Source: Convolutriloba macropyga
Lineage: Eukaryota
Length of the DNA stretch: 56,703 nucleotides
Direction of reading: 5' to 3'
Assembly: GCF_964194025.1 (NCBI RefSeq)
Contig: NW_027453125.1
Coordinates: 1-56,703, forward strand
Each line of letters opens with the position of its first letter. Within the stretch, counting starts at the first letter, position 1. A model generated the notes under the pieces. The model worked only from the letters and a program-made list of their open reading frames with translations. It had not been told where the DNA came from and searched no databases. The position numbers were made by a program, and so were the translations under genes. Positions 2,708 to 56,651 of this stretch are shown piece after piece.

Positions 2708-2886
2708 TCCAATCTCCCAGCCGCAGCGAAGCCCGAATACCCCAAGCCCTTAAACCCCAAAACCCTACAAGGATGCACTACCTCGTCCCAGTTCCGCGGC
2801 ATGCCGGGAAGAAGTATTCTATTCTTAATCTTTTTCACCCTTGGGAGAAGGTGGGTCGAAAAACCCCTGCCCCACTCTTTAACTTC

Positions 2887-2919
<33 letters not shown>
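2887..2919 (+). repeat. (AAT)n microsatellite immediately 5' of the TSD
   Basis: About 10 AAT units. Confidence 0.9.
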
Positions 2920-2921
<2 letters not shown>

Positions 2922-2940
2922 GTAATAATTAAAAATCGGA
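2920..2940 (+). repeat. Target-site duplication, left copy (right copy 5917-5937)
   Basis: Exact 21-bp direct repeat bounding the retroelement. Confidence 0.95.
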
Positions 2941-5916
2941 AACATAAAGGCCTGGGGGACCCTAGGAGTGGGGCCCTAATCAACACAGTGCGTCTCATCT
3001 GCTATCTGCATGCCTCCCAAAGCGACGGGGTTCGGTACATCATCGAAAATGTCCCGGGCACAGAGAAACACCCGGAGATTGCTAGAATGCTGGGGGCCCC
3101 TGTAAAGCTGGATGCCCCCCCCTGTGGGTCAGCGGCGCGTAGACAGACGCTGTTCTGGCAGAACCTGGCCCCCGTCGAGGAAATACAATCTAAGTTCGGG
3201 GCCCTCCCGCCCCCGTCCCAAACAGTGAATGGTGCCCTGAAACGGGCAGGGCTGCATACCTGGCGGTCCCAACCCCAGGAGTTGGGCGTGACCTGCTTCC
3301 CTGGGGACCCCTACAATCTCCCGGGCCTCCCTCAGCGAGCCATTCCCAAGATGGTCTGCTTCAAGGGCTCCCATGCGTTCCGGTTTAAAAGAGTCCGGGG
3401 GAGGATGCTCCCCGGCCCTGGCATGCTTTACAAGGGCAATGAACTGACGGAACCTGACGCCGAAGTGGCCGAGGCCCTGATGGGATTTGAGCAAGGGGAT
3501 ACGGCGGCGCCGGGCCTCCTGCCTGGGCAACGGCGCCACCTGCTGGGCCAGTGCATTGACATTAACTTATTCTCGTGGTTAATTGCCACGGCCTCCCCCC
3601 GCACGGAGCTGCACCCGCCACCCCCCTGGCCCCGAGCACGGCACGCAGTCCCAGAGGAGGGAGTCAGGCTGTGGCAGGTCTCTGAGGCACAACGGGCGGC
3701 ACGCTGGCTGGGGGACCCCCTCCCTTGGGACTGCATGGCCCCCCTGTCGGATGCACCAGGTCTAGTACCGAGTCCACCCCTGGAGGATGCGACGAGGGCG
3801 CTAGTTGTCCCTCCGCTCCGCCGGCACCTTGCTCATGACCCACGGGCCTGGGTGTACACGGACGGCTCTAGAAGTGAGGCTTCCTCTACACTGGGGGCTG
3901 CCGTTGTGCACCTAGAGACCAACACCTTCGTTAGGCTGGCATGTACGGGGAAAGAGGAATGTAACACAGTGTTTAGGGCGGAGCTCGTGGGCATCCACGA
4001 GGCTATCTGTCATTTTAGTGAACGTGAGAGATTGTATGTCCTGAGTGACTGTGCCTCGGCGATACAGGCGGTGGACGCCGCCGTCCGCCGCCCGCACGAG
4101 CGGGGCTACCACCACCACAGGCCCCTGCTTCACGCCATAGCCCAGGGGATCCTAGAGAGGGACCGCTCAGGGAAACACACGGTCATACATAAGGTCAGAG
4201 CTCATGTGGGCATAGAAGGGAATGAGCTTGCAGATTGGCATGCTAAGTTTGCGGCGAAGCATCCGCTGGGTACGGAGGATTTCCCTGTGAAGGCACACAC
4301 CCTGGGGGCTGCGCCGGCCCGGCCCTGTTACTGGCTGTTCTATGAGCCGGGTGTACCGTCCCCCCAAACAGCAGACTCTGCGGGGAAAGCCCCCGCAGCT
4401 CGGGAAGGGCCTAGGAAGAGAAAACTTGGCCATCTGCAGAAGGGACCTGATGTAAGCCCTGACCCCACAAGCCCCCCCCCACCCCCTGCAACGGATGCTC
4501 GGCCTTCGGCCTCGCAGGAAAATAAAGGGGGGGAGCCAGATGTACCCGCTGGCCAGCCCGGACAAGAATGTGGGGAGAAGGAGCCCGTTAGACATGCCTT
4601 TACTGACCCGCAGAAGCATATCAGAACTCGGGTGCGGCCCAGGGTGTTAGAGATGACGGCCTGCAACTCCCTCTACAGGAGACTGATTATGGCTGCCAAA
4701 CAGAGGGGGGACCAAATTGAGGAAACTGCGGCTGGCCTGGCTAAGCTGCATAGAGAGGGTAGGCACAGGGATGCCACCAGAATCTTTAAGTTCCTGTGGG
4801 GGCAATACTACAATGGCAAGCTGGCGAGACGCTACGGCCACGCCACGCATGACAAGTGCCCCCTCTGCAGCCTACCGGACTCGTGCACTCACATAGGGGC
4901 GGGGTGCCCGGCCCTTGCCCCCCACTACCTCCTCCGCCACCAAGCGGCTGTACAGGCTGTACATGTGTTTATCCGTCAGAGCGAGAAGGGGGCGGGGGCT
5001 ATCCTGGGTAACCCCCTGACCTTGGTTGCCTGTGATGGGGGCGGGGAGGCTGCAGCTAGCAAGGACCCCACACTCCGAACCCTGGCCGGCCTGGAGGCAC
5101 ATGCTACGAGCAGACAAGGACCCCCCAGAGACTCAGACCCCAGCCTTTGCCTGAAAGAATGTATACATGCACCGAAGTACCTGCCTGAGTGGGTCCTGCC
5201 CAAAGCAGTACACGACCGCCTGTTAGCCGAGGGGGCCGGACTGGCCCCGGACATTGTGTATGCTCGGGGAGTACCCAACCTCTGCCCCCCCCCACCCAAC
5301 TCATTTAACCCGTGCCATTGCAGCCTGCTGCTGGTGGAAGTTGGGTACTGCCAGGACCTGCGTCTAGACAGCAAAGAACAGATGAAGCTGGGCAAATACG
5401 ACTCGCTTGTCACGGCCCTACGGGAGAGGTGGGGCAGGGTCACTCTAGTTGGGATTCCCCTAGGGATTGGTGGGACTGTGTCGAGCTCCACCGCCCAAGA
5501 ACTCGCATTAGCCCTCTGTCTCAAGCGACCTAACCTACAGTCAGCACACCGTAGCACAACCGAGGCAACCCATGGCGCAGACAAATCCGAAGACGAGGCA
5601 GGGGAGGTGGACGCTAGGGCGCTGCGGGCTACGAGGAAGGCGTTGAAGAGTCTCGCCAAGACGCTTCGGAGCCTGGCGCAAGCACACCTTCTGCACATCA
5701 TGAAGGCGAGAGTATGTAAAATGCTGGATGAAGAGAAACCTACCAGGGGTGGCGACGCTGGGGCCCCGAGTGTGATCAAATAACCTGGTGGGGGGCAGTT
5801 CCCTAGCCAGGCTGCTCCCCCCCTCTCTACTCTCAGGCTACTAGGCCCCCGGCGCTTGGCGCTGGAGTGCTGATGTCTATATGTATCCTTACAGTGTAAG
5901 GCAGTCCTCCTCCTCC
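2941..5916 (+). mobile_element. 5'-truncated non-LTR retrotransposon (RLE-type, Dualen/RandI-like) carrying a cytosine DNA methyltransferase domain
   Basis: Identical 21-bp flanks TAGTAATAATTAAAAATCGGA at 2920-2940 and 5917-5937. Short 3' UTR ending in (TCC)4. The ORF is open from the left junction and encodes RNase H, a zinc knuckle and an RLE. Confidence 0.9.
2943..5783 (+). CDS. Retrotransposon polyprotein, N-terminally truncated: DNMT (motifs V-X) - RNase H - CCHC zinc knuckle - restriction-like endonuclease
   Basis: In frame from 2943: HKGLGDPRSGAL..YIIENV (3045), PVKLDAPPCGSAARRQTLFWQNL, EALMGF..RRHLLGQCID. RNase H: VYTDGS (3852)..AELVGI..SDC..KVRAHVGIEGNELAD. Knuckle: CPLC..HIGAGC (4857). 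RLE: RH..PDIV (5247)..LVEVG..KLGKYD. Confidence 0.88.
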   Translation, partial: HKGLGDPRSGALINTVRLICYLHASQSDGVRYIIENVPGTEKHPEIARMLGAPVKLDAPPCGSAARRQTLFWQNLAPVEEIQSKFGALPPPSQTVNGALKRAGLHTWRSQPQELGVTCFPGDPYNLPGLPQRAIPKMVCFKGSHAFRFKRVRGRMLPGPGMLYKGNELTEPDAEVAEALMGFEQGDTAAPGLLPGQRRHLLGQCIDINLFSWLIATASPRTELHPPPPWPRARHAVPEEGVRLWQVSEAQRAARWLGDPLPWDCMAPLSDAPGLVPSPPLEDATRALVVPPLRRHLAHDPRAWVYTDGSRSEASSTLGAAVVHLETNTFVRLACTGKEECNTVFRAELVGIHEAICHFSERERLYVLSDCASAIQAVDAAVRRPHERGYHHHRPLLHAIAQGILERDRSGKHTVIHKVRAHVGIEGNELADWHAKFAAKHPLGTEDFPVKAHTLGAAPARPCYWLFYEPGVPSPQTADSAGKAPAAREGPRKRKLGHLQKGPDVSPDPTSPPPPPATDARPSASQENKGGEPDVPAGQPGQECGEKEPVRHAFTDPQKHIRTRVRPRVLEMTACNSLYRRLIMAAKQRGDQIEETAAGLAKLHREGRHRDATRIFKFLWGQYYNGKLARRYGHATHDKCPLCSLPDSCTHIGAGCPALAPHYLLRHQAAVQAVHVFIRQSEKGAGAILGNPLTLVACDGGGEAAASKDPTLRTLAGLEAHATSRQGPPRDSDPSLCLKECIHAPKYLPEWVLPKAVHDRLLAEGAGLAPDIVYARGVPNLCPPPPNSFNPCHCSLLLVEVGYCQDLRLDSKEQMKLGKYDSLVTALRERWGRVTLVGIPLGIGGTVSSSTAQELALALCLKRPNLQSAHRSTTEATHGADKSEDEAGEVDARALRATRKALKSLAKTLRSLAQAHLLHIMKARVCKMLDEEKPTRGGDAGAPSVIK

Positions 5917-6983
5917 TAGTAATAATTAAAAATCGGACACAGACTACAAGTACCTACCAACCTCAAATCTGATGCTGGTCAAAAATAAGGATGGGCCGAT
6001 GGTTCCAAATGACATATTGCAGTAAAAATATTGACACGCACCTGATCGAACTGACACGAATAAAAAAATCCCACTGGCGACTGGATCTCCATATAATAAA
6101 GGAACGTAGATAGAATCTACGTAGAATATTGCAGGATCGAATGATGATAATTGATAAAAATGATAACATTTAGATGATTCACAAATCACATGCACCCAGC
6201 ACAGTGCAGGCGGCAGCAGCACCTCTGTACTCCTCTCTCTAGCGAGTCAGAACAAGAAGTCAGAACTCGGAAATCAGCTGTCACCTCGACGTTCTGTATT
6301 ATTATAATACTAGTATACATGCCACATGTGTGCCATGGGATGTGCCGTGTTCGCCTGGTACGGTATGGTAGGTACAGCCGTACCTACTCTAGAGAGCTAC
6401 AAGCTACAGCCCGTGCTTCCTTCTGCTCGTACGTACCCTACCCTAGGGTAACGTACTCGTACAGTATTAGAGAGAGGCTTTTGCCTTTTTTTCTCCGGCC
6501 GGCCCGGGAGAAGGTAGGTAGGTATCCTTACCTACCTAGGTCGAGTAACAAAAAAATCGAGATTCGATCTAGTCTCGAAGACCAGGCTCCGCAGGGAGGT
6601 ATTTCGCAGTCCGCTGTGTAATTACGAATATGTCACGATAGTACACCACATGACGGAATAATATTTGCATTCTGCGTAGTACACATGTACTCATGGTCAC
6701 AGATTTGTTCCTCCCGCTGTTTCGTCTGCAAACCGTTTACTGTTCGGAAAAGTCCGTGCTACATCTACGTATTCTACGTTCAACGGGCACCCCAGAAATT
6801 CGATATTTGAATTCCGCACGAATTCCTTAGAATTTGCACGAACGTTTTCACATTCAGACATAGACAGTATAGTGGTTACATGACATGTAATATAAACAAT
6901 GTACATACTACTACTATATTATTGGAACAGACACGGGGAGGGGCCCAAGGGGGAGGTTTCCGACTCCGAGGGGTTTCCCCTCG

Positions 6984-18163: not shown

Positions 18164-20212
18164 ATGTTTAACTCGAGTACCGCTGCTCCGTCTCGATGCC
18201 GTGCTTCTCAGCTGCCCGGTCGCGTCGCTGCTGCAGGCCCTCCCACACCTTGCCAGCTGGCCACTTCGAACCTTCGAGCACGCCGGGGACATGCCGGAGC
18301 GGATCTCGCCGCGCCCCAACGGTACTCGCTCTACGTGCGATCGAATGTTGGAATCGTCCGAGGACCCCATGGTGGAAGCACCAAAGGGCGCCTACACCAC
18401 ACCGCAGCACTCGCAGTCGCGGAGCCGCCTGTCGTAAACCCCTCGGGGCAGCAGCTAGCTCCGTCTGATCGGACCGAGGAACCTGATCTAGTGGGCAGCC
18501 GCTACCGTCTAGGGCCAGTTCTTGGCAGGGGCAGCTTTGGGACGGTGTACTTGGCCAATGACACGCATTTGGATGACCGCCTCGTTGCTGTGAAGAAGCT
18601 AAGTCGGAGGGCAAAATATCGTTTGACGGAGGAGGACCAGCAGTTCAAAGTTCGTGAAGAGGTAAGAACTACTTGACACATGCACGCGAGGGTTGCAAAA
18701 TCGGGGTTGTACACTCTTGATGTGACGCAGTCGACGGTGATGATTCACGGATTCTGTCATCGTCAATATACGAAAAACACACATTGTAGCCACGTCGATT
18801 GTCCCCATGTCGCATCCTCCACATCAAGCACCCTACGTTTCCACCACAGCGAGAACGTGAGCTGTTGAGACTGTATGTATCTAGGCGCTATACATACGCA
18901 GTACGCTTGTAGAGCTGCGTGGCTGCCTGCCGAGGCGGATGGATGACGCAGTGTTGTACTCACGTACATCATGTTTGATTTTCCCCAATCGACTTGTCAT
19001 GCCTAGGTTCGCTTACTACGGGGGGTACTGAGCTGTCGACTTGTCAGTCAGTTCCATGGTTTTGAAACCATGGGCGACCACACGTACCTGGTGATGGAGC
19101 GGATCGACGGGCCAAGTCTCGAGGAAGTGGTCAAGCGACGTGGGAAGTTGACTGAGAGCGAAGCGGCAGCGGCTATTCATGACATCCTACAGGTCAGTCC
19201 GGGCAGTGTATATGTGAGAGGTCCCCTTGCAGCTGCTTCCATGAATTAATTGCAGGCACACCTCTTATCACAAATGACACTATTGTCGCTATATCGACGT
19301 AAGTGATGCGATGTGTCTACAGACCTTGTCACACTGCCACGGAGCTGGGATCTGCCACTCTGATGTTAAGCCCGCAAACTTCTTGTACCAAGCAGTGAGC
19401 AGCTCCATTGACAGCAAGCCTTCAGGACATGTACAAGAAGCTATGGGACATTACACTCAAAGACGTCCCAGTAATCAGGACCCGGAACACCTCTGTGCGC
19501 TGGACCTCAACATGCGCGTGCTGAAAGCCATTGACTTTGGATGTAGCCCGCAGGTCTCCCATGCTCATCCTAAGCTCACCATTCCCAAGGTCCGTGCTGT
19601 GGCCATGCTAGGACCCCATCTCTGCTTCCATGGGAGTTGTGTTGCTTGCTCGCTACTCAGGGCCCATGATAGACGGCTGACTTCCTGTTGCCCATGTACT
19701 GCCATATTTCAGGGCACTCCAGTATCTTCAGCGCCAGAGCTTTACATGAGGAGCTACAGCAGCGAGGCTGACATTTGGAGCTGTGGCATGATCCTCCACC
19801 ATCTGCTCACCGGCAAGCTCCCATTCTGGGATTCTCCGCTTGATGACCTCACCAGGAAGCAGGTAAGCACAGCCTCTGTGCAAAAGCCAGCGGCTTTCCT
19901 CTGACTTGCGCCTCGGCCGTTGCCAAATGCAATGCCTCCTATTTCCCCTTTCTTTCTTGTCATGAGGCCCGCAAGGGCTCTTGTATGCGGACTGTCCTCA
20001 TGCTAGTCTCTGTCTGATGTTCACAAGTGTTTGATGGAGTCATGCATGCCAAGTTGGATCTGAACACCTCAGACTGGCAGGACATTTCGCCCGAGGCGGC
20101 GGACCTGTGCAAGCAAATGCTTGAGCGACGGGAAGCGTTCCGCCCGTCGGCAAACCGCGCAGTGGAGCATCCATGGATTCAAAAGCACATGCAAAACCGA
20201 ACCGGCAGTTAG
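18164..20212 (+). CDS. Ser/Thr protein kinase, CDPK/CAMK-like without EF hands; 5 exons (~18164-18661, 19007-19192, 19323-19589, 19713-19862, ~20027-20212)
   Basis: LGRGSFGTV, VAVKKL, YLVME, HSDVKPANFL, KAIDFG, GTP..APE, ADIWSCG, ISPEAADL..HPW. GT-AG introns, except that the last acceptor is anomalous. Ser/Arg/Ala-rich N-terminus resembles a transit peptide. Confidence 0.88.
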
Positions 20213-26636: not shown

Positions 26637-27209
26637 TTCGCATTGGTTTTCGGAATAATTTTTCGAGGATAGATGGATTCGTAGAGTTCCCGCGGGGCAT
26701 AGCGTAGCCGTTAGACATTGTGCTCCCAGGTTTTGTGTTGTCTTAGAGAAGCGAACTCCCCCCCCTCCCCCCACCGGCCCCTCCCCCCGGGGGTTGCCTG
26801 TCATTACCTCTCAATCGTTGCCAACGAATAAGGAAGGGTGTGTGTTGCGAAAAACGACCTTGTCAAAGACCATAGCCCCAGTCCACCCCATATCCCAACA
26901 CTCCCCGAGGCGGAAATCGTCGTTGTGGATTACAGACTGCCATCGTGCTTTGTACGTCGAGCTACTGGGCATCTGGATCCTCCATGACCTATTCCCGTGA
27001 GCCCACGCCGTATCAATCAGTGCATGATCCCAAATGACACACGCCAGGCCGGGACGGCACCGGGAGGAATGGGAACAGCCGCCTCCACCCGCCAGCTCAG
27101 CTCCCGGTGTCGATGACGCTCTTCCATGGTCTATGTGCATAGCGCAGTTACAGTTCCGGCACTCGATGGCATGCTATTGCAGATTCGGAATCGAAACTTG
27201 TCTGAGACT

Positions 27210-27500
27210 TGTGGGGTGGGGCGGGGTGTGGGGGCAGGCGTTGGGCCCTGGGGTCGGGGCAGGTGTTGGGCCTGGGGTAGGTGCTGGGGTGGGACCAGGA
27301 GTGGGACTAGCTGGAGTGGGGCCGGGGTTAGGGGCCTGTGGTGGGGCTTGGGTTTGGCATCCCCACTGGAGATTCAGCAGTGGGAGTGGGTGTCAGTGGG
27401 TGTTGGGGTGGTAGCGGGTGAGGGTGTTGGGGTGGGGGCAGGCATAGGCACGGGCGTTGGGGTAGCAGTGGGAGCTGGAGTTGGCGCAGGTGTGGGTGCC
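27210..27500 (-). repeat. Degenerate PTPA/PTPG-coding-like GC-rich repeat downstream of the HemK-like gene
   Basis: Minus strand reads SAPTPAPTPAPTATPTPVPMPAPTPTP..., with stops and frame changes. Confidence 0.5.
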
Positions 27501-27736
27501 GACTTCGGAAGGAGAATGGGAGACAGAGTTCAACAGTTTCCTGCGCTTTCTGTCAGCGGTGAAATGTATTCCTTCCTATATGAGAGCGCCTCCACCGCAA
27601 ATCTTGGAGCTGGAAGGGCCGCTGCCTGGTACTGGCTTAGATCATGAGGCAGGACCCGCGCTGACAGAATTCTTCGCCAAATGAACTGCTGCGGACCCCT
27701 GTGGGCTGCTGTGAAAGGTTGAGTGGCTGATTCCCC

Positions 27737-30700
27737 TCAAATTGAGTTGCTGTTGGACCTCGGGGGGGAGGCGACCACTGCACGGTGCACACCCCTCGCA
27801 TCGCGCACAGCTTCCAACACCTCGAAACCCGCATGCTTCAGTACTGCAGAGACCCGGATGTGGCCTCGCTCCCCTCCTGGCGCTTGGAACACGACGAGGC
27901 CACGAGGCGACAGCAGTGGAGGCTTGCAATGTGCAATACTGGACAAGCGTTCATTTGCACCACAGGCGTGTCAGTTTCACAGTGCAACCAGTTGAAAGTA
28001 CGTAAAATCAACAATGTGCGAGGGAAACTAGGGGCCGAGACCTCGATGCAATGGCAGCATACGCCTCCATCCCGGTCTGTCCCCCCACCAAAGCTTTGGC
28101 TCCCTCATTTGTGATTCGCCCCTTGGCCCTGCACCAGTCACAACCGCCAGCCAGGAAAGCTCTCAATGATTCCACACGTCTCCCAGTGTCTGAGTATACC
28201 AAGCATCCTACGCTCGGCGCCCTGAGGCGAAGATGTGCAGCCCTCCAGCATGACACGGAGGGGGATCATGTCTGTCTGTTCCACTGGCATGATCCTCTCC
28301 TGGGCCCTCCTAAGTAGTGAATCCGACTTCTCTGCTGCTCAATGGCTCAGACATGACGTACACCTGGCCTGGTACTTTGTTCCCTCTCTCCGCCTGCTCC
28401 TAGATCTCAGTACAGCTGTCCGAGTGCACAGTCCACCATGGCACTGTGACACCGCACCTGTCGTCCGCCAGGAAGGGAGGGTTTGATAGGACGACATCGA
28501 ACGGAGTTCCTTCGCAGCATAGCTCCTGTGCAAGACGCAAGGCGAAGATTATGCGCGGCAGCGGCAACAAATTGGTACGCCAGGTGGCCGTTCACTCTCC
28601 CATGCAGGTGGGGGCGGTTGCGTGCAGGGCAGAGTGGCAGCGCGGTGGACAGCACCAGGCCATAAAGGGATCTGAACAGCAGTTGGTATCGCTTAGGGGC
28701 TCTGACGTACAACGCACCTGGCGCATTTCTAGCAGATGCAGCTTCGAGAAGTCTGCCTTGCAGAGCCTCACTTGCGCTGCGGTGATAGCCCCCTCGTTGA
28801 CTCTGGCCTGCAGGCCAGGTCCCGGGACGCTTAGACAGGCGTCCCCTTCACCAGTTTGAATTTTCCAAGCCCCGCGTCCCTGTGATTGCTTAGCTGCAGT
28901 CCTCAATTGTCTCCCCACAAACCCGTCACTCACTCTTTGTGGGTCCGGAGGGAAGGGACATAGACAGATATACTATAGAGGCACAAAGGCAGACAGATCC
29001 GGGAAGCCTGGTGACATAGTCCGTGGAACACAGGATCTTACCTGGGTGTTCCTCTGTGCAAGCTGCAGGGCGCTATCACTCAAGTCGACGCCCACTCCGC
29101 TGGCCTTAACGTCTGACCTACTCAAGCGGCATAGCAGGGACAGGAGCAGGCAGCCGCAGCCAGTGCCCAGGTCTAGGACTCGAATCTCGCTCTCAGGGCT
29201 GGACTGCATCAGGACTCTCCTCTGCATGTTCTCGATGGCATGCACGGCAGCCTGGATGTGCAGCGCAAGGCCCAGTGGGAAGTGGGGCGGACGGAGCTCT
29301 GGTGAGGGGTTCACCTTGTCTGTTTATAGGTGTGAACTGACACAGGCTCTAGACGGGGGCATGGAAAGAGCTCATGGATGACGATAAGCACGGTGATGCG
29401 AGATGAGCTCGCACCGGATGTTGAACGCTGAACAGAACGCAAGGAGCACAGCATGCGATGGAAAGGAGGTGGCGTTGTGTCTCTCTGGGTCTGACGGAAA
29501 AAGCAACATGTGGACCGCGGCGGCGGAAGGGATGATGGGGACACCGGCGATGGCGGCAGTACATACGGTTCACTCCGCTTGCGCACCGTTACAATTGTTT
29601 CTGATGACTTCCTTGGAATCAGCTCTGGAGTGGTGGCAACAAAGTCATACCCCAAGAACTCCACAACCACTTCCTCCCCAGCGGCACGGTTTTTCATCTC
29701 GGCCCTGGCAGGGTTTCGGATTTCAAGGGGTCAGAGCAATATCCGATGCCTCGCCAACACGTGGGTCAAGGGCTGCCGGCAGCAGATGAACATTCCCAGT
29801 ACACTGAGGTAGGGGAACGGCTGCAAGCGGCAGAGGGCAGTGCGGGGAGTGCTTTGTGACACGGGATTTAACACTTTGTGAGTCCTCTCACATGCGGCCT
29901 TCTCGGATGGTGGTGCGTCTCAACAATTTCTTGAACTTTTTCGGGACTGCGTGCTCCACAACAGCGCCGAGGCCGAGAGCGGGAGGGAGTCCGGACAGCT
30001 TTACCAGGGCGATGTGGGCACCCCTAACAAGTGCGGCCAAGGGACACAATCAGCCTGTAATCTGGCAGCACTCTACATGACCCAAAGACGCAACTGGCGC
30101 GCATGAAGCGTCTGATCGTCAACGGCACACGACCTCGAGACGCAGCACAGGCAGCCGAAACCGCGAAGAAGCCGGTGTGTGTTCGGTACTACCTCTGCTG
30201 TTCCAGAGATCGGCGTGAGCATCCGGCAAGAGGTGGATTGGTCACGTGTGGGTGCTCTCAGCGCTTTGCCAGTCATCATTCAACAGGCGGCCGGGGAGGG
30301 GGGGGGGGGGGGGCAGTGCTCACCTGGCTCCCTTGACAGACGGGCTGCCAGTCCTCCCCACAACCGCCCCTGCATCCCTCTCCAGTTGAACACAAGCATT
30401 CCATGCGCTCGTACTGCCCTGCGATGCCGTGAAAGCCAACTCCAGGGTACCCTGGCAGCGCAGCGGCAGCCATGAGCAAGTCAGCACATGTGTCGGCCAC
30501 GACTGCACTCCAGCGCTTGGAGACCTGCCACTGACTTGCTGCACGAGAGTCGAGAACGCTCCGCGGATCACTGGCTGCGATGCCCTAGCTGTCCCTCAAA
30601 GCCCCTCACTTCCTAACGGCCCAGATTGGTCCACACAGCAGCTGCGGACGAACAACTGCTGGAAGGATATCCCTTCACTGAGGATCTTGTTGGAATCGCG

Positions 30701-31315
30701 AGCTACCGTAACGCTGAAACAGTGCTGGGAGACGGCCAATGTTTTGCAAGTTGGTTCAGGGAGGCAAAGGCTGCAACACCTTAGGTGAGTCCGTGCGACT
30801 CAGAACCACCGCTGCAAAGTGTGCGGTTATCGATGGGGCCGCCGCAGACAGTGAGGTAAATGCCTCCGGGGTCTTGGCTATCAGCACCTGGAGGGTTGAG
30901 AGCGGAAGGTGAGGTGTCAGCCAGCCTGGTCTGGGGTGTGTGAGGAGGTATCGATATCGTGGCCGCCGGGAGAGAAATGGAAGAGCCACCAGGCCGGTGC
31001 GAGGACGAGGGGGGGAGGGGGGGGGAGGGGGGCGGGAGGAGGATCTTTAATGCCGGTTGCAGAGCTGTGCGGGCATGTGTGTGGGAAAGACAACATGTGC
31101 GGTCTTCTGGCAGCCAGACTTACCAGTCCAGAGGCGCCCCTCTCCAGCTCACCGGCGACCTTGGCCTCGTCCCCCCACTGCTTCACTGCGCATTTTTCAA
31201 TGGGCTCCCCAGCCCTGCTCGCCCGCCCATTCCCGCCCATGCGGCCGCCGTCCATGAGAGGTACATCCGGGCGCTTCCAGACCACAGCTGCCGTATCCGA
31301 CTCAGCCACTACCTG
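27737..31315 (-). CDS. Multi-exon gene: degenerate RluA-type pseudouridine-synthase-like domain fused to a HemK/PrmC-family N5-glutamine methyltransferase (5' exons further upstream, not resolved)
   Basis: HemK: EFLG..LIPRKSSE (~29580-29650), VLDLGTGCG, VDLSDSAL, FDVVLSNPPF (~28474-28500), ALVGGQTGMEAY, VRDARGVHR then stop at 27737. RluA-like: VVAESDTAAVVWKRP, GELERGASGL|VLIAKT, GAHIAL..VPKKFKKLL. Confidence 0.72.
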
Positions 31316-31991
31316 TGCCAGTAGACAGCCAATCACAGCCGCAGCGTTGCTCAGGCCACTGTCTGTCCGATCTTAATGCATTTGCCGTGGTGTGCATTAT
31401 ATGTCCACAACAGACTCTGGCCTAGATGCTGAAGCACTAGTGAAGCACGTCCATGGACGTCAACGTGTTGCGCGCATGTTGCGCTGCATGTGCTGTTGTT
31501 TGGAGTTTAGGTGCACAGCTCTGCCCTAGCAGTGGCGATTGCCAAGTGGTGCCATTCCTCCAAGACGGAGATTTGCCAAGTCCCTAGCTGCTCCATCCTC
31601 CCTGCACGCCCTACTCGTTCGCATCAGCACATTGCGTCGATCCCCATAGATCTCCAGACATGCAAACCTCCCCCTCGCCGCTCCCCAAATTACCCCTTCG
31701 ATTGATTTGGCAAAGAATTAGGGAACAACAGGCTTAAGATGCAAGCCTAGCTTCCATGAAGCTACACTGCTCACAATGATCTCCGTACGTGGCATCCCTT
31801 CCCGAAGTAAATGCATGGCCGGCCCACGCGCGCGTCATACGGATCGCACTTAATTTTATGTCATCATATGCAGGCCGGGGTACTGCCAGCTATATAGGCC
31901 GAGCAAAGCCATCGCTCCTCGAGAGTCAGACACGATAGGGACAGGTTCAGTGATGCTGGGCTTCAGACCTGACCGCCTTCCTCCCTTCTCC

Positions 31992-32022
<31 letters not shown>

Positions 32023-32925
32023 CCATGCACAATATACCTAGGGGCCGGCTACCACTTGATCCCTTCAGATCGACCGCGACATGCATGGGAGCACACCTCC
32101 AAATCGTATCGACTGGGGTTCGAGGTTGAGGAACGTTCCCGCACGGCAGCTACGACCACCATCCGTCTTTCAGCCCTTAGATCCAGTTGTCCCCTGGGAT
32201 ATTCATCTCGAGCGACGCCCGCGATAGCTCGACGGCCAGTTGCAGCTGCACGCGGCCGCATGCGCAGCAGCGCTAGCACTGTTGCGCAATGGAAAGTGAT
32301 CCCGCGCCAACCTTCGTCGCGGCCGGACCGCCGTCCAGGGAGCCAGAGATTGCAAACGGCCTGAACACGTCCATTCTTTTCGGCCATAGGCCTCATCGCA
32401 ATTTCATTACGTCTAGTGGAACAGGAACGCCAGGGTGGGCGGTCGTCCCAAGAGCGTTGTCTCGGGAGAGAAGCTCTGCAGTCTGTTTGGCGACTGCCGA
32501 AAGCTACTTGTGGGGATAGCCGCGTTCCTTCCCATGCCACTGGTCGAAGCGGCATGTCGGCGAAAGCGGGATCTGTCCTCCGACTAGCCAGAGAAAGGTA
32601 CTGGTGGCTACAGCCAGTCAGCGGTTTCAAAGTTTCGGTGTCCCATCACCGACACTGACAGCGGCACACGACATCACGAAGGGTGCTGGCGGCTGAAACA
32701 GTAGGAGATCTACTACCAAACAAGGCCGTGCTTTAAAATTAATAATAGCTTATTAATTAGCTTAATTAATTAGCTTAATTAGCTTAAGTAGACTGGGTAC
32801 CAGCTGATACGGACGCTCCACCTCCACCTGCCCGGGGGTGTAAAAAAAAAACAGAACGGAGGTTCCAGCTGCCGTGGGGCCGGGTGAATCGGCGAGCTAC
32901 GCGGTGTGTAGTACCCCCCAACTCC

Positions 32926-32927
32926 CG

Positions 32928-32958
<31 letters not shown>

Positions 32959-32974
32959 CCAATATTCACGTGCA

Positions 32975-33008
<34 letters not shown>
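32926..33008. repeat. poly(C) tract and (CA)n microsatellite
   Basis: Directly visible. Confidence 0.9.
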
Positions 33009-33009
<1 letters not shown>

Positions 33010-33596
33010 TCCTCTCACAACCTCTCGTTCCCCAGAAGCAGCCACATGCCCATCGCAAGCTGGAACAGCTGCAGGAGTGCCCACCACTTCTGAGGGCCGT
33101 ATGCCTAGCTGGCCAGCAGCACCAATATGCCCCCACATAGTTTGGATGAGCTAACGGATCAGCACCGACAGGAGCGCCTCGAGCAAGTTTTCATGAAACT
33201 TGGCTGGTTTCAAGCGGTATTATTATCTACCAAGTGCTAAGTATGTATGTCAAGTATCTATGAACCCAATTACCTGCCCTGTTTGCCGCCAAAGCGATGA
33301 CAGCTCGTCTGGCCGGGCAGGGCAGCAATTGGGAACGACAACAAAACAAAACGCTGGCCGAAGGGGGCTGTCGTTGTCATGCTAAGGTATCGGCTTAGGG
33401 GAGTTGTGGGCCACCATGGGTGGAGGGGGGGGGGGGGGGGGGGCGGGGGCGGTGCGGGCTGCCTGAGAGCACGAGGTGGTGGCGGTCGGGGTCAAGGGGC
33501 GGTCAGTGATTCTCTACGAGGGGCCGCCGGCTGTCCCTAGCTAGATGCGGGGCCAGCCAGCCAGTCCCAGAGCTATGCGTCAAGCTGACACTAAGT

Positions 33597-36101
33597 TCAG
33601 TGTGCTGTGGGAGGGTCTATCCGTGCTTGGCTCGGTCGGCTGTTGGGTGGGTTAGCCGGTGCAGTCGGGCTGTGGCCGGTAACTGGCGCCGCAGTGCCGT
33701 TGGCAGCAAAATCCTCGAAGCTCTCGAGGTATTCGGGGGTGCCGAAGGCGCTGGGTGGTGTGTCATTGTGGATGACGCCCTCTTCTGCCGGGCTGAGCTT
33801 TCGGAGTGGGAAGCTGCGCATCACTGCCATGGCCACCACGGCAGCAATCCCGCTTGCAGAGATGACCGCCAGCTTGGCGGCGTTCATGGCATCAGGCGAG
33901 TGGGCCATGGCGAGAGCTATGAGGAACAGGCACATGGTGAAGCCAATGCCTCCCAGCAGCCCGAGCACCACCAGGTGCTTGGTGGTCATGCTCTTGGGCA
34001 TCTTGGCAATGCCAGACTTGACCGCAAGGACGCTAAAGGCGGTGATCCCCAATGGCTTCCCCAGCAGCAGGCCAGCCAAAATCCCCACGGAAACCGGCTG
34101 TGACATCAGCCCACCCAGCATGGACAGGTCGATTTGCACCGCGGTGTTGGCGAGCGCAAACAGCGGCATGATCAGCAATGCGGTCCAGGGCACCATCTTG
34201 TAGATGAGATGGTCCATGAGCGTGGGGGAGTGGCCGTGCTCCAGCGGCACTGCCTTGCTGGTGTGGGGGGCCTTTGAGGCAGCGGGGATGGCAAGCGCCG
34301 TGATCACCCCAGCAACGTCAGCGTTGACCCCCCCAACCAACAAGCAGTACCACAGCGCCACCCCGGCGGCGCCGTACATGGCGAGGTGCAGCTGCTTCCA
34401 CGGCAGGCGCTCGATAGCAAAGAGACTCACACTCACGGCGGCGGCAGCAGCGAGGAATGGCGCGTTTATCTTCGTGGCGAAGAACAGAGCAATGACAAGG
34501 ATTGCGCCCTGAAAAGCCAAGCCAGAACAGTGCGGCAGAGAATTTGTCAGCTGGGAGGGGAACATGGATCAGGCCCGCAGATTTCAGACCAGGTCCGCCT
34601 TTCGTGGAGCGAGAGAGAAATGGGTTAGCGCGGTGCGCATTGCGAGGCGAAAGAGAGGAGCTGTGGCCTGTCCGCAGCGGAGAGCGGCTCTGTGCTGTGG
34701 GCTGGAAGCGGCACCGATGTCATGGCGCAACAGGGGTGCGTGGACCCGGTGTATGGGATGGGGCTGGGGGGCAGCGCTTCGCACCAGGTCATCCACGGTG
34801 GCGAGAGTGAGGAGGAAGGCCGATGAGCTCCTTGGCATCCGCCTGTTGAAGAACCCAAAGATGCCCATCGCGAACGCAATATCGGTCGCCATGGGGATGG
34901 CCCATCCGGACATGGCGCCGCCCGAGCCAGCGTTGAGGGCGACATACATGCAGATAGGGACAACCATACCCCCCAGGGCTGCAGCGCAAGGCAGAATCGA
35001 TTGTTTGATGGAGGCCAGGTGCCCAAACACACACTCCCGCTTGATCTCAAGCCCGACGGCAAAGAAGAATAGCGCCATCAGGCCCTCATTCACCCAGGCC
35101 TGCAGGGTTAGCTGGTGCCCGCCCAAGGGGGGCCCGATTGGCGTGTCCCAGAGCCCAATCCAGCTGGGCCCCATGCCAGTGTTGGCGAGGATGATAGACA
35201 GTGCCGTTGCTGCCAGGAGCACAATGCTTCCAAGCCCTTCCTCGAGTGCCTGCAGGCCATCGAGACATCAGCATATCATGCTGGACGTAGTCAGTGCGTG
35301 GGGCAGCAAATGGCAGCTAAGGGGGGGGGGGGGGGGAGGGAGCCCAGGGAAGGGGACGTCTAGGTGAGGGAAGCAACAGTGCGAAGCCCGAGTGGCTAGT
35401 GGCGTCAGCAGAGGTAGCTGACAAGGGTGGGGGGCAGGGAGGCAGGGGCCGTATGGACGGGGACAAGCGAGGCTAGGGCCGCAGTACGTGCCCAAGGCCA
35501 GGGCCTCTGAGCGGAAATGGGAGTGGGTACGGCAAGGCTCCCCAGTGAGGAAGGTGGAAAGGGAAAGGGTTAGAGGGAGAGGGAAAGGTAGAGGGAGCGA
35601 CCCCTTCTCGAGCAGGATGTATGGGACAAGTTAGTGACCAGGGCAGCTATGTATTCAGCTCATTGCCAGTAGGGTACACAACAGCAGGTTGAGGAACAGA
35701 GGAGCAACGCCCCTCTGCTCCAGGCCACCCCTCGGGTTTGTTACCTTGTGCAGCGGCGATAGCGTGTTGTTAGTCGGTGCCTCCAGCACCACAATTCCCG
35801 ATGGTTCTGGCACAGGTGCCGCTATCGAGTGGCACCGCACGGTGCGGTGCCTCGGCCGCAGCAAAGACGAGGGTCTGCAAGCGGTGGAGCGGCACCTGCG
35901 GAGTGAGGAGGCGAGGGTGGGGCAGGCAGAGGGGGTCCGCTGCTCCGAAGATACCCGCGGTTGTCCGGCCCGTGAGTATCCTGTACTCGGCTGCTGCGAT
36001 TTCACCCTAATGACGCCATGACTGCGGGGCGTCCTCGCCACAGAAAGGTTGCGGCGTTGGGCTGTTCCCACACCGTTGAAGGCCGCCGTGGGGGCAGCCA
36101 T
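33597..36101 (-). CDS. nhaA: NhaA-type Na+/H+ antiporter with putative plastid transit peptide; exons 36101-35745, 35249-34785, 34508-33597 (~577 aa)
   Basis: WVNEGLMALFFFAVGLEIKRE, GWAIPMATDIAFA, LATVDDLGAI, PLFALAN, GKPLGI, GIGFTM. Both introns are phase-0 GT-AG. N-terminus is Ser/Arg-rich. Confidence 0.93.
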
Positions 36102-36772
36102 TCTAGCTGTCGCGCTGTGTTCCTCGAGTTGCAAAAAAACCGAGAACCTATGATGACGCGCGGCTATTTCGCTCGACAGTACTCCAACTCGTCCCGCTTG
36201 GACTGATCGCAGGATCCTGAAACCAGCAGAGGGTTGAGTGGCTGCGCGAATGTGGGGAACAGTTTGGGTTGCTGCCGTGAGAGAGCGCGCGTCGGCGATC
36301 CACTCGACGGCCTGGCTGCCGTGCAGCTCGTGGCCGCTTTCACGGTTTTTGCCGCGTGTTGATCACGTACCACAAAATGGGATTACGTACAATATTCCAT
36401 ACGAGCCAATAGCCAGCGAGAGGTTCATTTTTAAGAAAATGAATGAGACTCGATGAGTTTCTGTACGACTATGAGGTAATAGGGAGCAACGACCTGTTGG
36501 TTTTAATTTATATATATATTATACTACCGTAGACTATAGTACACCTCGCCGTACTCCTGTAGGTACCTACCGTACGAGGCTGGGAGGGTGAATTAAGCCG
36601 AAATACGGCTAGGGTTTAGTTTCCGACGTTAGGGTTTCACCATTTGACCCAAATTCCCATAAACAACAGACAAGGCTCTACTAACTAATAACTACCTGCC
36701 TCAACTCATGCACGGCGCCTGTTTTTGAATATCGGTCTATTTCGGGTTAGGGTTCAATAGGGCTGACTAGGC

Positions 36773-47699: not shown

Positions 47700-50600
47700 G
47701 CGAAGGTGCACCTACACTTGGTGCACCGCCTCCACGGCCTGACGTCCCGGGCCCACGCACGCCCCCGGGCCGTTTGACACCCGCGCAGCGCGAAATGCCC
47801 TCACCCAGCGTCCACAGCCAAGGCTGCGCCAGCAATGTCGCCCAGCGGCAGCCACTGAACACCCAGCCCTCCGGTCGTCCGAATCCGACAGACATATCTA
47901 CATTGGGTCTGCCCGCTGCTGCAACAGTGCCATGGGGCCGCCAAGCGGGCCCCCGAGAGATGGCAGTCCAAGGCGCTAATGTCACACCCCCCTTGCTGGG
48001 TTCACCCACTGCAGCCAATGCCGGCCGCACAGCACCGGCCATCACGCCCCCGCCCCCAGGAAATGTCCGGCCTATCCCCACACCTAATTCCCCGCCCCCA
48101 GCTATGGAAAGACCAGCAGTTCCGCCAGGCGGCAGGGTAGGCCTGTGCAGAGGCTCGCCCACATATCAACAGGCCGCCCAGCCTGTCTCATTTGCAGGCC
48201 AGCAGAGAACCCCGCCTCCCCCGCCCCTCTCACAGTCCAACAAGTCTTTGCCAGCAGCTCCGAGTGCATCCCAAGCTCTCAGCTGTCCCACAAGATCCCC
48301 AGCACCAACTGCCGCTCCAGCCGCCAGTGACGCTGGAGTTGGGTCAGAGGACCAGAAAGCCAGCGGGGCCAGCCCGACACTCGGGCCGGGGCCGCAGACG
48401 AAGCCAGGGCCGATGGGGCACGACGCTGGCAAGGGCGGCCCTTCAGCATCTGACGCCGTCGCAGACACAGCCAAGCTGGCAACTGAATCCCCTGAGACAA
48501 AAATTGCACCCAGCAAAGCTCCAGGGATTGCGCAGGTAGGCTTTCAATCAACGGATTTCCCTGCATGAGGGATCCACACAGCACCCCTCCCCCTTGCGCG
48601 GAGGCCCTCCTTCACAATTGTGACTATGTGTGAGAACAGAGCGGTGGACACCCCGGGAAATCCTTGTGCACAGGATGTTTGGGGTTCCTGCCCCGATTCT
48701 TGTCGCCTGGATGTACAGAGGGTTGCTAAGCCCGATCCGAGCTGCGGCACCCCCCTGCAGATCTGCGGCCGTCTGCATCCCATGCCCCTCCTTAATCCCC
48801 TCTTGCTCCTAGCCTTGCGTTCCCGCCCCACCTGCTTCACGTGCTGCCCCTCTCCATCACGCTGCCCGTCTCTCTCGTTCAATTGATGGCATGACGATGT
48901 GTTTGTGTCTGATGGCGTCTGCGCATGCAGCCACATGCTGCCGTAGAGGCAGAGGCTTCAGGGTCTGCGGCCGTGGCTGCAACTCCCAAGGGTGGCGCTT
49001 CCGCCCCGACAGCGGCTACAGAGTCTGATGCCGTGGCTGCTATTCCGAAGGCTTCCGCCCCGGCAGAGGCTTCAGAGTCTGTCGCCGTGGCTGCTACTCC
49101 CAAGGCTTCCGGCGGAGGAATGGCACTCACCAAGCCCTCATCACCAGACTCCGGTGAAACTCCGCCGCCTCCAGAGTCACCTGCCTCGACCCAGGTTGCT
49201 GCCGCGGCGCGCAGCTCCTCCCCTCCCCGTGCTGAGCGAAGCTGCCTGGTTGCAGCAGCTCCTGAACAGCCCTGTGGCAGCCAGCAGCCCTCGCCGGCTT
49301 CCCCGCCCGTGCAGAAGCGAGATGAGGAGCCAGTCAGTTCCACCTGTCTGATCGCGGAGAAGAAAACAGAGGAGACTTCTGCGGAGTCAAGGCCACAGAA
49401 GAAAGCAGAGGAGGAAGCAGAGGAGACTCCTGCAGAGTCAACGCTCCAGATGACGGCAGAGGAGGAAGCAGAGGAGACTCCTGCAGAGTCACAGCCCCAG
49501 AAGGAAGTAGAAGCGACTCCCGCAGGGTCAAGGCCACAGAAGAAAGCAGAGGAGACTCCTGCAGAGTCAAAGCCCGGGAAGAAAGCAGAGGAGGAGGTAG
49601 AGGAGACTCATGCCGAGTCAAGGCCCCAGAAGGAAGCTGCAGAGGAGGAGGCAGAGGACACTGCTGCTGAGTCAAGGCCCCGGAAGAAAGCAGAGGAGGA
49701 GGCAGAGGAGACTTGTGCAGGGTCAAGGCCCCAGCAGGAAGCAGAGGAGGAGGCAGAGGGCCCCCGTGAAGCGTCAAGGCCTGGCCAGAAGAAAGCAGAG
49801 GAGGAGGCAGAGGAGACTCTTGCAGAGTCAAGGCCCCAGAAGGAAGCAGAGGAGGAGGCAGAGGAGCTTCGTGAAGCGTCAAGGCCCCAGAAGAAAGCAG
49901 AGGAGAAGGCAGAGGAGACTTGTGCGGAGTCAAGGCCCCAGAAGGAAGCAGAGGAGGAGGCAGAGGATCGTCCTGCAGCGTCAAGGCCCCGGAAGAAATC
50001 AGAGGAGGAGGCAGAAGAGACTCCTGCAGAGTCAAGTAGGCCCCCTGCTGTGGACATCACTGCCCCTGCGTCTGCTGAGGGCACTCCTGGCATGGTCGGC
50101 TCTAAGCTCGCACGCGAGCCGTCGCAGGCGGAGGCGCTGACTCCTACTCAGCAGCCTTCACAAGATCAAACCAGGGTTCGTACAGATAACGAGGCAGAGC
50201 AGGCCGCGTCTCTGGACCTTGGGCCGGATGCCTCTCCCCCAGCAGCAGAGACCGCAGAAGGAACAGGAGGTACTAACATCCCAACGTTAGGTTGTGTCCT
50301 TTCCCCAGCCCCTGCCATGCGGTGATTGATTAGCTTGCTTGCCTGCACCATTCCTGCTTGCGTTGTTAAACCTGTCCTGGTTGGCTAGTGCAGTCTTCCC
50401 TGCTGTACAGCCGCCGCCGCCCCCCTCCATGCCCCATCATGGACATGCACTAACTGTGCCCCTGCCGTCTCTTCACATTCCCTTTATCTCCTGCCAAACC
50501 CTCTCCATGTCTCTCTGCGCCTCTACTTTCTTGAGTTTGCTGCATTACAATCTGCCCTCCCACTCTCAACACAAAGACCATGTCGACGTTCCTGTGAAGT

Positions 50601-55563: not shown

Positions 55564-56651
55564 TACCCCCTACTGTACCTGGGTAGGAAATCTAGGTACC
55601 CTAGGGTACCCTCCCGGACCTATCCACCGACCTACCTACAGCACCTTCCGAGTTCCGGTAGTACGAGTACTATCCTGTATCCACCTTTCCGGTATCTAGG
55701 GATACTATCGACAATCCTCATCCTTTTCGTACGAGCATGCATACGGGACGATCACCCATGTGAGAATATGATCGAAATATTTTAAAATTCTGGAAGACAT
55801 GGGCCGGCGCGATGGCTCGTATTGTACTCGTAACGGGTGGAGAGGGAAAAGGCAACAAAAAAAGGCGGTATATGCAGAAATTAAAAAGGTAGGTTAAAAA
55901 TAGGGTTTATTAGGGTCTTAAAATTTTAACACCGGTATTTCTAGGGTCTTTGCTAGGGTATTGCTTATTGTCTCCACTGCAGAATTCATTTCTGCAGATT
56001 GCCGCACTGCCCTGGCATAACGTACAAACTAACAAATGTACCCGTACTGGTACCGCCGGTGCGCATACTCGTACGTATTGATAGTTTTTGAATTTCGAAT
56101 AATAAGCATGGTGCACTGTACTCGTACAGTACTTGCTAGTACTATACGAGTACCCACACTTGTTAGCACTTACTTTCCGACACCAACCCTGACCTATTTC
56201 TGTTCGCTACTCGCGATTGCGCAACAGATCTGGCTTTGTCCCTCCCTCGCCGTGTTCGTCCCGCTTCAGCGGAGCTGAGCCCGTGATTTATCGTCGCCAG
56301 GGTCTTAAATTCAGGCGAGGAAACCGTTTATCTAGCTGCTGCTCGGCGAGTCGGCGCTCGCATTGCGCATGTCTGTCTGTCCGTCCGTCGGTCTCNNNNN
56401 NNNNNNNNNNNNNNNNNNNNNNNNNNNNNNNNNNNNNNNNNNNNNNNNNNNNNNNNNNNNNNNNNNNNNNNNNNNNNNNNNNNNNNNNNNNNNNNNNNNN
56501 NNNNNNNNNNNNNNNNNNNNNNNNNNNNNNNNNNNNNNNNNNNNNNNNNNNNNNNNNNNNNNNNNNNNNNNNNNNNNNNNNNNNNNNNNNNNNNNNNNNN
56601 NNNNNNNNNNNNNNNNNNNNNNNNNNNNNNNNNNNNNNNNNNNCTTTCTCC

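Follow-up and report, generated by a model that had tools for sequence, protein, structure and literature searches.

Contig NW_027453125.1 of the Convolutriloba macropyga assembly (RefSeq GCF_964194025.1), which was analysed over positions 1 to 56,703 and is called the window below, raises the question of whether a long interspersed nuclear element (LINE) can carry a cytosine DNA methyltransferase (DNMT) within its own replication polyprotein, and, if so, in whose genome and with what possible effect. An earlier note, made from the sequence alone, had described positions 2941–5916 as such an element, in which C5-methyltransferase motifs stand in canonical order in one stop-free frame and are followed by RNase H, a CCHC zinc knuckle and a restriction-like endonuclease (RLE). 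All of the quoted motifs were found where the note had placed them, in a frame of 954 codons, and its two end points proved to be those of a single insertion with a 21-bp target-site duplication (TSD) on both sides. It is very probable that 2940–5916 is one recent 5′-truncated insertion, made via target-primed reverse transcription, of a low-copy dual-endonuclease non-LTR (non-long-terminal-repeat) element of ~15.5 kb with a DNMT3-type domain.

Frame 3 of the window was open from 2919, preceded by a (TAA)n microsatellite, to a TAA stop codon at 5781–5783. The direct repeat TAGTAATAATTAAAAATCGGA was found on both sides of the element, at 2920–2940 and 5917–5937, where the last 1–4 bases of the 5′ copy are microhomology with the element. 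The inserted copy, on the forward strand like all of its parts, consisted of the last 946 codons of a second open reading frame (ORF2) and, from 5781 to 5916, the stop codon, a 133-nt 3′ untranslated region (UTR) and a (TCC)4 tail in place of poly(A). TSD, 5′ truncation and (TCC)n tail are together the hallmarks of an insertion made through target-primed reverse transcription. The C-terminal two thirds of the DNMT3-type domain were located at 2940–3617 with motifs VI, VIII, IX and X, namely KHKGLGDPRSGAL from 2940, IIENV at 3039–3053, SAARRQTLFWQNL at 3129–3167, EALMGF at 3471–3488 and LLGQCID at 3540–3560. The RNase H, knuckle and RLE that had been read downstream of it were all present: an RNase H domain at 3849–4256 (DGS ... 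E ... D ... H..D; Pfam PF00075, E = 4.6e-12), the CCHC knuckle CPLCSLPDSCTHIGAGC at 4857–4907 with an RHxAAV motif (RHQAAV, 4935–4952), an arrangement (4857–4952) like that upstream of R2-type RLEs and invariant in eight family members, and a putative RLE core of the PD-(D/E)xK type at 5244–5477, whose invariant residues were PDIV (5244–5264), EVGYCxDLR (5325–5363), K..K..KY and PLGxxG.

The first DNMT residues of the window copy are KHKGLG, 8 residues past the catalytic Cys. Since 5′ truncation has thereby removed motif I and the PCQ loop with the catalytic Cys (motifs I–IV), this copy cannot be active and, judged by its motifs, is inert, dead on arrival. For the same reason, Pfam recognised only the RNase H on the window copy and left the DNMT uncalled. 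A check for the empty site found no contig in any sequencing run that spanned 2860–2940 and no reliable 2941>5917 joint; a 16.3-kb contig from an independent assembly of run X1 joined upstream element sequence to the part seen in the window, and is not assignable to one copy.

A protein-level search of the assembly to which the window belongs led to contig C1707, where the DNMT segment recurred with 100% identity inside a 3815-codon open frame, and to weaker matches in other very long frames. The window copy was 98.3% identical to the last 2.98 kb of the C1707 element, which is 15.5 kb long and bounded by a 12-bp TSD of its own (TATAGCTGTTGT). The C1707 element encodes an ORF1 of 938 aa, in which Pfam found no domain and no DNMT was found, and an overlapping ORF2 of 3815 aa, the first ATG of which lies 52 nt before the ORF1 stop, and it closes with the same 3′ UTR (137 nt) and a (TCC)5 tail. 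The order in ORF2 was two C48/Ulp1-like proteases, an apurinic/apyrimidinic-type endonuclease (APE), a reverse transcriptase (RT; YADD), a PHD finger, a PCIF1-like domain, the DNMT3-type domain, RNase H, a CCHC knuckle and an R2-like RLE, while in four family members Pfam was blank over the N-terminal 850–2190 residues. The earlier note had suggested collecting genomic copies for the upstream motifs, and this full-length copy supplied them, with motif I (GIATG), PPCQ, the RT and the APE-type endonuclease.

The DNMT occupies ORF2 residues ~2750–3095, downstream of the RT, and has the unpermuted motifs ELCAGIATG, GPPCQPYS, IIENV, RRQTLFWQN, EALMGF and LLGQCID (I, GIATG; IV, PPCQ; VI, ENV; VIII, RxxxFWxN; IX, MGF; X, GQCID), all of which were present in the full-length copy and throughout the family, the window copy lacking I and IV. 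The catalytic Cys is residue 2862 of ORF2, and the RT and the PCIF1-like domain lie at residues 1440–1960 and 2440–2700. The location of the DNMT had been predicted in two parts. It does lie directly upstream of RNase H, but not at or just after the RT, from which it is ~800 residues downstream; the PHD finger and the PCIF1-like domain separate the two in the full-length copy and are absent from the truncated copy in the window. The Pfam DNA_methylase profile (PF00145), which had been proposed as a check, likewise gave a divided answer, with no call on the window copy and a significant one on the full-length copy (2.6e-9).

Alignment to DNMT3A identified GIATG and SAAxRxxxFWxNL as DNMT3 signatures. 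A profile built from 15 DNMT domains borne by transposable elements (TEs) matched, in the PDB, DNMT3A (3e-23), DNMT3B/C (~1e-19), DNMT2 (5e-10) and M.HhaI (5e-9), and did not reach DNMT1. In a Foldseek search with the AlphaFold model of the domain (pLDDT 91.3, pTM 0.90), the best 50 PDB chains were all DNMT3A/B/C, with E-values down to 3e-16 and TM-scores of ~0.8 by target, and the matched AlphaFold-DB clusters were DNMT3-like entries. Profile and predicted fold therefore support a domain closer to DNMT3 than to DNMT1, DNMT2, DRM or the bacterial enzymes, as the earlier note had supposed for the N-terminal segment of the window frame. The PCQ Cys, the ENV Glu and the R and W of motif VIII were invariant across subfamilies that are 40–50% identical and in the LTR-borne relatives described below.

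Upstream of the DNMT, the PCIF1_WW profile (PF12237) matched at 53.6 bits against a cut-off of 31.1 bits (8e-13 within ORF2, 2.7e-14 on the isolated domain), and the human and zebrafish PCIF1 structures were also matched (4e-7 and 3e-6, respectively). We call the domain PCIF1-like and not PCIF1 because the NPPF motif and the N-terminal WW domain are missing: NPEY replaces NPPF in all ten PCIF1-like domains, and Pfam found no WW domain in ORF2. Dam scored only 0.055. Across the family, the amino-acid identity of the PCIF1-like domain was 0.44–0.64. The PHD finger was recognised by its C4HC3 pattern and by weak Pfam matches (PHD_4, 4e-4; PHD, 5e-5 in a sister subfamily). A chromodomain suspected by eye at ORF2 ~2215–2240 was dropped, as there was no Pfam Chromo match. 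Separately, a two-exon gene on another small unplaced contig (C2565:15744–16253) had the best PCIF1_WW score of the assembly (2.9e-19); it may be the cellular PCIF1 of a cobiont and a candidate source of the LINE domain.

The RT matched RVT_1 at 3.8e-27 and was closest in the PDB to R2 (8.5e-25), followed by L1 ORF2p (4e-21), and the RNase_H match on the C1707 copy was 4.8e-12. For the APE, Exo_endo_phos covered profile positions 2–225 of 225 with an E-value of 1.3e-3, and the residues N, E(TP), GDFQ and DH were invariant and in canonical order in eight members. The C48 repeats had an invariant H-D-Q-C order in four repeats, and protein-language-model features (Atlas) gave Peptidase_C48 in 67 of 100 matches with a top score of 0.95. 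At the C terminus, eight members shared the invariants C-x2-C-x4-5-DSCTH-x-G-x-GC, RH-x-AAV, PD(I/L)(V/I), EVG(F/Y)C-x-DLR, K..K..Y and P(I/L)G..G, and the family profile of this module matched only R2 proteins in the PDB (E = 0.02), with the CCHC-RHN and K..KY..PLG of R2 in the same order. A structural model of the module (mean pLDDT 62, core ~85) led by Foldseek to R2Tg, two further R2 proteins and R2Bm, and then to PD-(D/E)xK cap-snatching nucleases, the best match being the R2 protein 9dou (E = 4.9e-3, probability 0.98), and by VIA-align to NgoMIV, SgrAI, R2Tg (Z = 5.3) and Hjc, with Z of 5.3–5.7 to R2Tg and type II restriction enzymes. On these grounds, we assign the C-terminal module to the RLEs with moderate confidence.

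APE and RLE together make up the dual-endonuclease layout that defines the Dualen/RandI LINEs, which were described by Kojima & Fujiwara 2005, as cited in PMC5029228. The resemblance to Dualen/RandI noted earlier from the truncated copy is extended by the full-length one, which adds the APE upstream of the RT and has RNase H, CCHC and RLE downstream, and the domain layout supports the assignment of the element to a Dualen/RandI-type dual-endonuclease LINE. The closest described architecture is that of the cryptophyte Dualen-1_GCr, with the order SET-C48-APE-RT-RNH-CCHC-RLE, where RNH is RNase H (Lescot et al. 2016, PMC5029228). As in Dualen/RandI elements and especially Dualen-1_GCr, C48, APE-like, RT, RNase H, CCHC and RLE domains stand in the same order in one giant ORF, and Dualen-1_GCr also bears an epigenetic enzyme, namely the SET methyltransferase. 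The present element differs in having no SET domain, in the PHD, PCIF1-like and DNMT3-type domains placed between RT and RNase H, and in the duplication of C48.

Several points weigh against this classification. The APE call, at 19 bits, is below the Pfam cut-off of 24.5, and the APE family profile had no match in the PDB. The C48 call was made from motif order and language-model features only, with no Pfam HMM support and a family profile that was blank against the PDB. For the RLE, both the model (pLDDT 62, middling) and the structural matches (E = 5e-3, Z = 5.3, weak) leave doubt. The assignment to Dualen/RandI was made by domain layout, and the family is of low copy number, with two copies of this subfamily and nine family loci in the assembly.

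The architecture is nevertheless not confined to the two copies. The ORFs on contigs C4007, C4596, C333 and C2229 of the assembly have domains only 40–50% identical to those of the C1707 element, and each follows the order (APE)-RT-PCIF1-DNMT-RNH-CCHC-RLE. PCIF1-like and DNMT domains co-occurred at nine loci in the assembly, all on small unplaced contigs. A protein search that spanned 5.8 billion proteins gave eight more proteins of the same order (P0002–P0009) from ENA assemblies, and to these a separate exhaustive search of a representative library added P0018, P0020, P0021 and P0022; in P0020, as in P0002–P0009, the order could be read from APE to RLE. The earlier note would have abandoned its reading had no methyltransferase fold been matched or had other copies lacked the DNMT; the fold was matched, and the DNMT was in the same place in the other family members examined. 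A sibling LINE, P0011 (L052, ENA ERZ18628587 scaffold_3282), has the order RT-PCIF1-like-RNH-CCHC-RLE without a DNMT and with only ~100 residues between the PCIF1-like domain and RNase H, which fits stepwise accretion of the domains, or loss.

In five out of six pairs compared, conservation of the DNMT equalled or exceeded that of the RT. Of all domains in the 3815-aa protein, the DNMT is the best conserved. The amino-acid identities of DNMT and RT between the C1707 element and its relatives were 0.73 and 0.69 for L051, 0.50 and 0.42 for C4007, and 0.54 and 0.49 for L047, while for C4596 the RT was marginally ahead (0.45 and 0.46). Between C1707 and L051, where synonymous divergence (dS) was unsaturated, the ratio of nonsynonymous to synonymous divergence (dN/dS, omega) was 0.06 for the DNMT and 0.07 for the RT. 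Purifying selection on the DNMT has thus been at least as strong as that on the RT. The window and C1707 copies differed with a dS of 0.041, a dN of 0.0078 and an omega of 0.19, from which it follows that most of their 1.7% divergence arose in selected, active lineages.

DNMTs of the same kind were also found in other TEs. In the same assembly, related DNMTs that are ~35% identical were detected in Gypsy and Copia elements (loci among L035–L046), namely Gypsy elements with the DNMT before the RT (C3642:70618–80577, C3927 and C44), Gypsy elements with the order RT-RNH-DNMT-PHD-INT (C1925:16383–22472 and C3484) and a Copia element with a DNMT3-type domain (C3925:11734–17973). The representative library contained 496 family clusters of TE-borne DNMT3 at E ≤ 1e-30; among the best 150 of these 496, tallied together with P0001–P0017, 105 were Gypsy-type, 2 Copia and 14 LINE-type. 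In an unrooted tree of 170 DNMT domains (IQ-TREE, LG+G4, quick search), all of the LINE DNMTs formed a single clade with a branch support (SH-aLRT) of 99, and the sister of this clade (99) comprised the Gypsy and Copia DNMTs of the assembly with three database proteins, the other 142 domains being outside. These relationships argue that the LINE lineage acquired its DNMT once and that TE classes have exchanged the module inside a single host lineage, and as the tree is unrooted, no TE class can be named as the donor.

Three further DNMT loci were observed on the chromosomes. Of the DNMT-bearing ORFs that resemble TEs, just one (L020, C6:8214094–8214774) lies on a contig of chromosome scale. 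It is a 688-aa open frame with 51% GC in a genome of 34–38% GC; it stood beside the small-contig Gypsy DNMTs in the tree on a long branch, had no high-identity nucleotide match to the other elements by megablast, and may have been misplaced, have come by horizontal transfer or be a relic of the animal itself. An intronless 392-aa frame at C15:23969286–23970380 matched the whole DNA_methylase profile (7e-35), and a multi-exon DNMT gene was found at C1:3302631–3328224.

In whose genome the element resides was judged from depth, composition, repeats and linked genes. The chromosomes of the assembly are those of an animal, with wnt genes, and the GC content was 55% throughout the window as against 34–38% at two chromosomal wnt loci. 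In four runs, which cover three samples, the word depth of the unique flanks and the element relative to a wnt locus was ~0.36, 0.46, 0.11 and 0.05, and a 9.9-kb unique part of the window was wholly missing from the fourth run (X4). A 50-bp dispersed repeat in the flank outside the element (2831–2880, no strand assigned) also flanks the C1707 copy and was present on at least 40 small unplaced contigs and no chromosome, which ties the window to the small-contig compartment. A single ENA metagenome assembly, ERZ25071359, contained both an ORF2 identical to that of C1707 (P0001) and a sister element at 64% identity (P0002), the former on a contig with a 6x tag and the latter on one with a 5x tag. 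On the 5x contig (ctg23576_5x_l), 5 kb downstream of the sister LINE, lies a multi-exon DUF3531 gene (L051:25759–27722; exon matches of 2.8e-11 and 8.5e-8) with an upstream exon that starts like a transit peptide; DUF3531 is a family of cyanobacteria and the plastid lineage, and among our control genomes it had a match in the cyanobacterium only. The carrier is therefore probably an algal cobiont, a plastid-bearing eukaryote of high GC content whose DNA was sequenced along with that of the animal, in which case TE-rich cobiont contigs would have escaped decontamination. A green alga would be a candidate that fits the Dualen connection. A dinoflagellate carrier was rejected, as the spliced leader was absent from the assembly.

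The host assignment is, however, indirect, resting on depth, GC, repeats and a linked metagenome contig, and other observations speak against it. Neither LHC (PF00504) nor DUF3531 was found in the assembly itself, and a tubulin search placed all genes on chromosomes C1–C16 with no second set, so that the assembly holds no complete second genome. Atlas searches with the NhaA exon described below and with the DUF3531 exon gave uninformative taxonomy or no result. These findings could also be explained if the animal itself carried the element, in a GC-rich, TE-dense and unplaced part of its genome confined to some cells or individuals (germline-restricted, supernumerary or highly polymorphic heterochromatin). 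Such a compartment would account for the retention of the contigs in the animal's assembly, for small contigs that do not make up a complete second genome, for the related DNMT-bearing ORF on the chromosome-scale contig C6, and for the window-to-chromosome depth of 0.27–0.46 in sample S1, which is near hemizygous. In two other samples, however, the contigs matching the flanks exactly were at 4–11% of chromosomal depth, which is incompatible with a germline nuclear locus, the GC gap of 17–20 points includes non-TE sequence, the repeats are common to small contigs only, the window contains intron-bearing exons of an NhaA-type antiporter, and the sister element adjoins a plastid-lineage gene at similarly low coverage in its metagenome assembly. 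We regard an origin in the animal as unlikely, though well short of negligible, and retain the plastid-bearing cobiont as the probable carrier, which would make many small GC-rich contigs of this animal assembly cobiont DNA.

The antiporter exons lie on the minus strand at 33597–35367 and matched the NhaA-type Na+/H+ antiporters (PF06965) at 1.4e-54; the N-terminal part of the profile must sit in another exon. This antiporter family is, to our knowledge, not a typical one in animals. Run X6, a small run of 80 million letters from sample S5, contained 30% of the sampled words of window 27000–36900; this run might be RNA and so could reveal expression of genes in the window. Short dispersed repeats at 1500–1893 and 2831–2880 reached a word depth of 400–2900 in the runs.

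What the element might do with its DNMT is suggested by the company in which the domain is found. A DNMT3-type domain acting in cis with APE, RT, RNase H and RLE could methylate the nascent cDNA or the target at integration, a PHD finger could read the chromatin through histone tails, and new copies would then arrive pre-marked and be tolerated by the host; the PCIF1-like domain could either modify the capped template RNA of the element or serve as a non-catalytic module binding RNA or Pol II. The fusion would bring a de novo methyltransferase physically to the site of target-primed reverse transcription, and because it is a single polypeptide, the idea of a self-methylating cDNA (de Mendoza et al.) becomes directly testable with one protein. 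The observed-to-expected CpG ratio was 0.47–0.56 with an excess of TpG in the LINEs, 0.77–0.85 in the flanks and 0.70–1.15 in the DNMT-bearing LTR elements. The same depletion was reported for SymbioLINE-Dnmt (de Mendoza et al., PMC5890265), and in the LINE copies it is suggestive of self-methylation.

Methylation by the ORF2 protein of CpGs in its freshly made cDNA or at the insertion site, during or just after target-primed reverse transcription, is a serious possibility that we put somewhat below an even chance. It is an inference; CpG depletion can also be produced by host DNMTs or codon bias, and the NPEY motif suggests that the PCIF1-like domain is possibly inactive. Less likely again, and offered tentatively, is an 'EpiLINE' in which the PHD finger as reader, the PCIF1-like domain as an adenine methyltransferase of the capped RNA or the RNA:DNA hybrid, and the DNMT3-type domain would together mark template and cDNA, the module having moved between LINE, Gypsy and Copia elements in one algal lineage in which retrotransposons would be the main carriers of DNMT3.

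The methyltransferase domains may instead have been kept as binding or scaffolding modules without methylation, the DNMT tethering the ORF2 protein to DNA or chromatin and the PCIF1-like domain binding the RNA template or Pol II. The change from NPPF to NPEY in all ten PCIF1-like domains would agree with this, as would the related DIRS1 domain of the PCIF1 clade, which has been argued to be inactive (Iyer et al., PMC4738411), and the DNMTs of SymbioLINE and KnitGypsy, which gave no methylation in yeast (PMC5890265). The invariance of all catalytic DNMT motifs, even across the divergent subfamilies and LTR-borne relatives, that of NPEY itself, which indicates a constrained pocket, and the CpG-depleted LINE copies speak against it, and we consider a role in binding or scaffolding alone improbable. 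An accidental DNMT, created by an assembly chimera or by one LINE copy that had recently, and only once, taken up an exon of a cellular DNMT3, can be dismissed as exceedingly improbable in spite of there being just two near-identical copies of the subfamily in the assembly, since each copy has its own TSD, the independent X1 contig connects element sequence from further upstream with the part seen in the window, the order is shared by five subfamilies that have diverged and by several proteins from metagenomes, the DNMTs of the LINEs fall into one clade, and selection on the DNMT is strongly purifying.

Retrotransposon-borne DNMTs have been known from a handful of element types, among which the sole LINE known so far has an orphan DNMT in ORF1. 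SymbioLINE-Dnmt, SymbioDIRS-Dnmt3 and KnitGypsy-Dnmt3 were described by de Mendoza et al. 2018 (PMC5890265), Copia and DIRS DNMT3s were added in a 2025 survey (PMC12344493), and EpiLTRs of Cymbomonas and Euglena with DAM, a DNMT4-like DNMT and a chromodomain were reported in a May 2026 preprint of the group of de Mendoza et al. by Fernandez-Moreno et al. 2026 (bioRxiv 10.64898/2026.05.21.726589), who list the elements of de Mendoza et al. and of the survey in addition to the EpiLTRs and call the EpiLTR combination previously undescribed. None of these elements is a dual-endonuclease LINE whose ORF2 includes both a DNMT3 and a PCIF1-like domain, and our targeted full-text searches found no report of one, in agreement with the earlier note, which knew of no description of its architecture.

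Like SymbioLINE-Dnmt of Symbiodiniaceae, the present LINE has TSDs, lacks poly(A), encodes a C5-DNMT on which selection is purifying, and has copies depleted in CpG. The DNMT of SymbioLINE-Dnmt, however, is in ORF1 and belongs to an orphan non-DNMT3 lineage, and its ORF2 is APE-RT only, whereas here the domain is of the DNMT3 type and lies within ORF2 after the RT, followed by RNase H and RLE. SymbioDIRS-Dnmt3, KnitGypsy-Dnmt3 and the Copia and DIRS DNMT3s share with it a DNMT3-type domain that is kept by selection within an RT-bearing polyprotein, but they belong to the LTR or tyrosine-recombinase elements, in which double-stranded cDNA is integrated, whereas the present non-LTR element copies its RNA at the nick. 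The EpiLTRs likewise combine two methyltransferase folds (adenine-type and C5) and a chromatin reader in one retrotransposon protein, but they are LTR elements whose DAM is prokaryote-like, whose DNMT is DNMT4-related and whose reader is a chromodomain, in place of the PCIF1-clade domain, DNMT3-type domain and PHD finger of this LINE. DIRS1 (PMC4738411) has a PCIF1-related methyltransferase fold with a departed catalytic motif in its polyprotein, but is of another element class, and in the LINE the domain is above the PCIF1_WW cut-off and NPEY is invariant. In the LINE, the DNMT is accompanied by a PHD finger and by another methyltransferase fold, the PCIF1-like one, and the Gypsy and Copia sister DNMTs in the same organism point to modular exchange of epigenetic domains between TE classes.

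Elsewhere in the window, runs of N (gaps or masked sequence) were present at 41347–41490 and 56396–56643, a 470-aa low-complexity ORF at 48913–50322, and an ORF with a weak match to the Pif1 2B domain, possibly Helitron-like, at 42385–43527. A protein-kinase exon was detected at 19278–19901 (6e-17).

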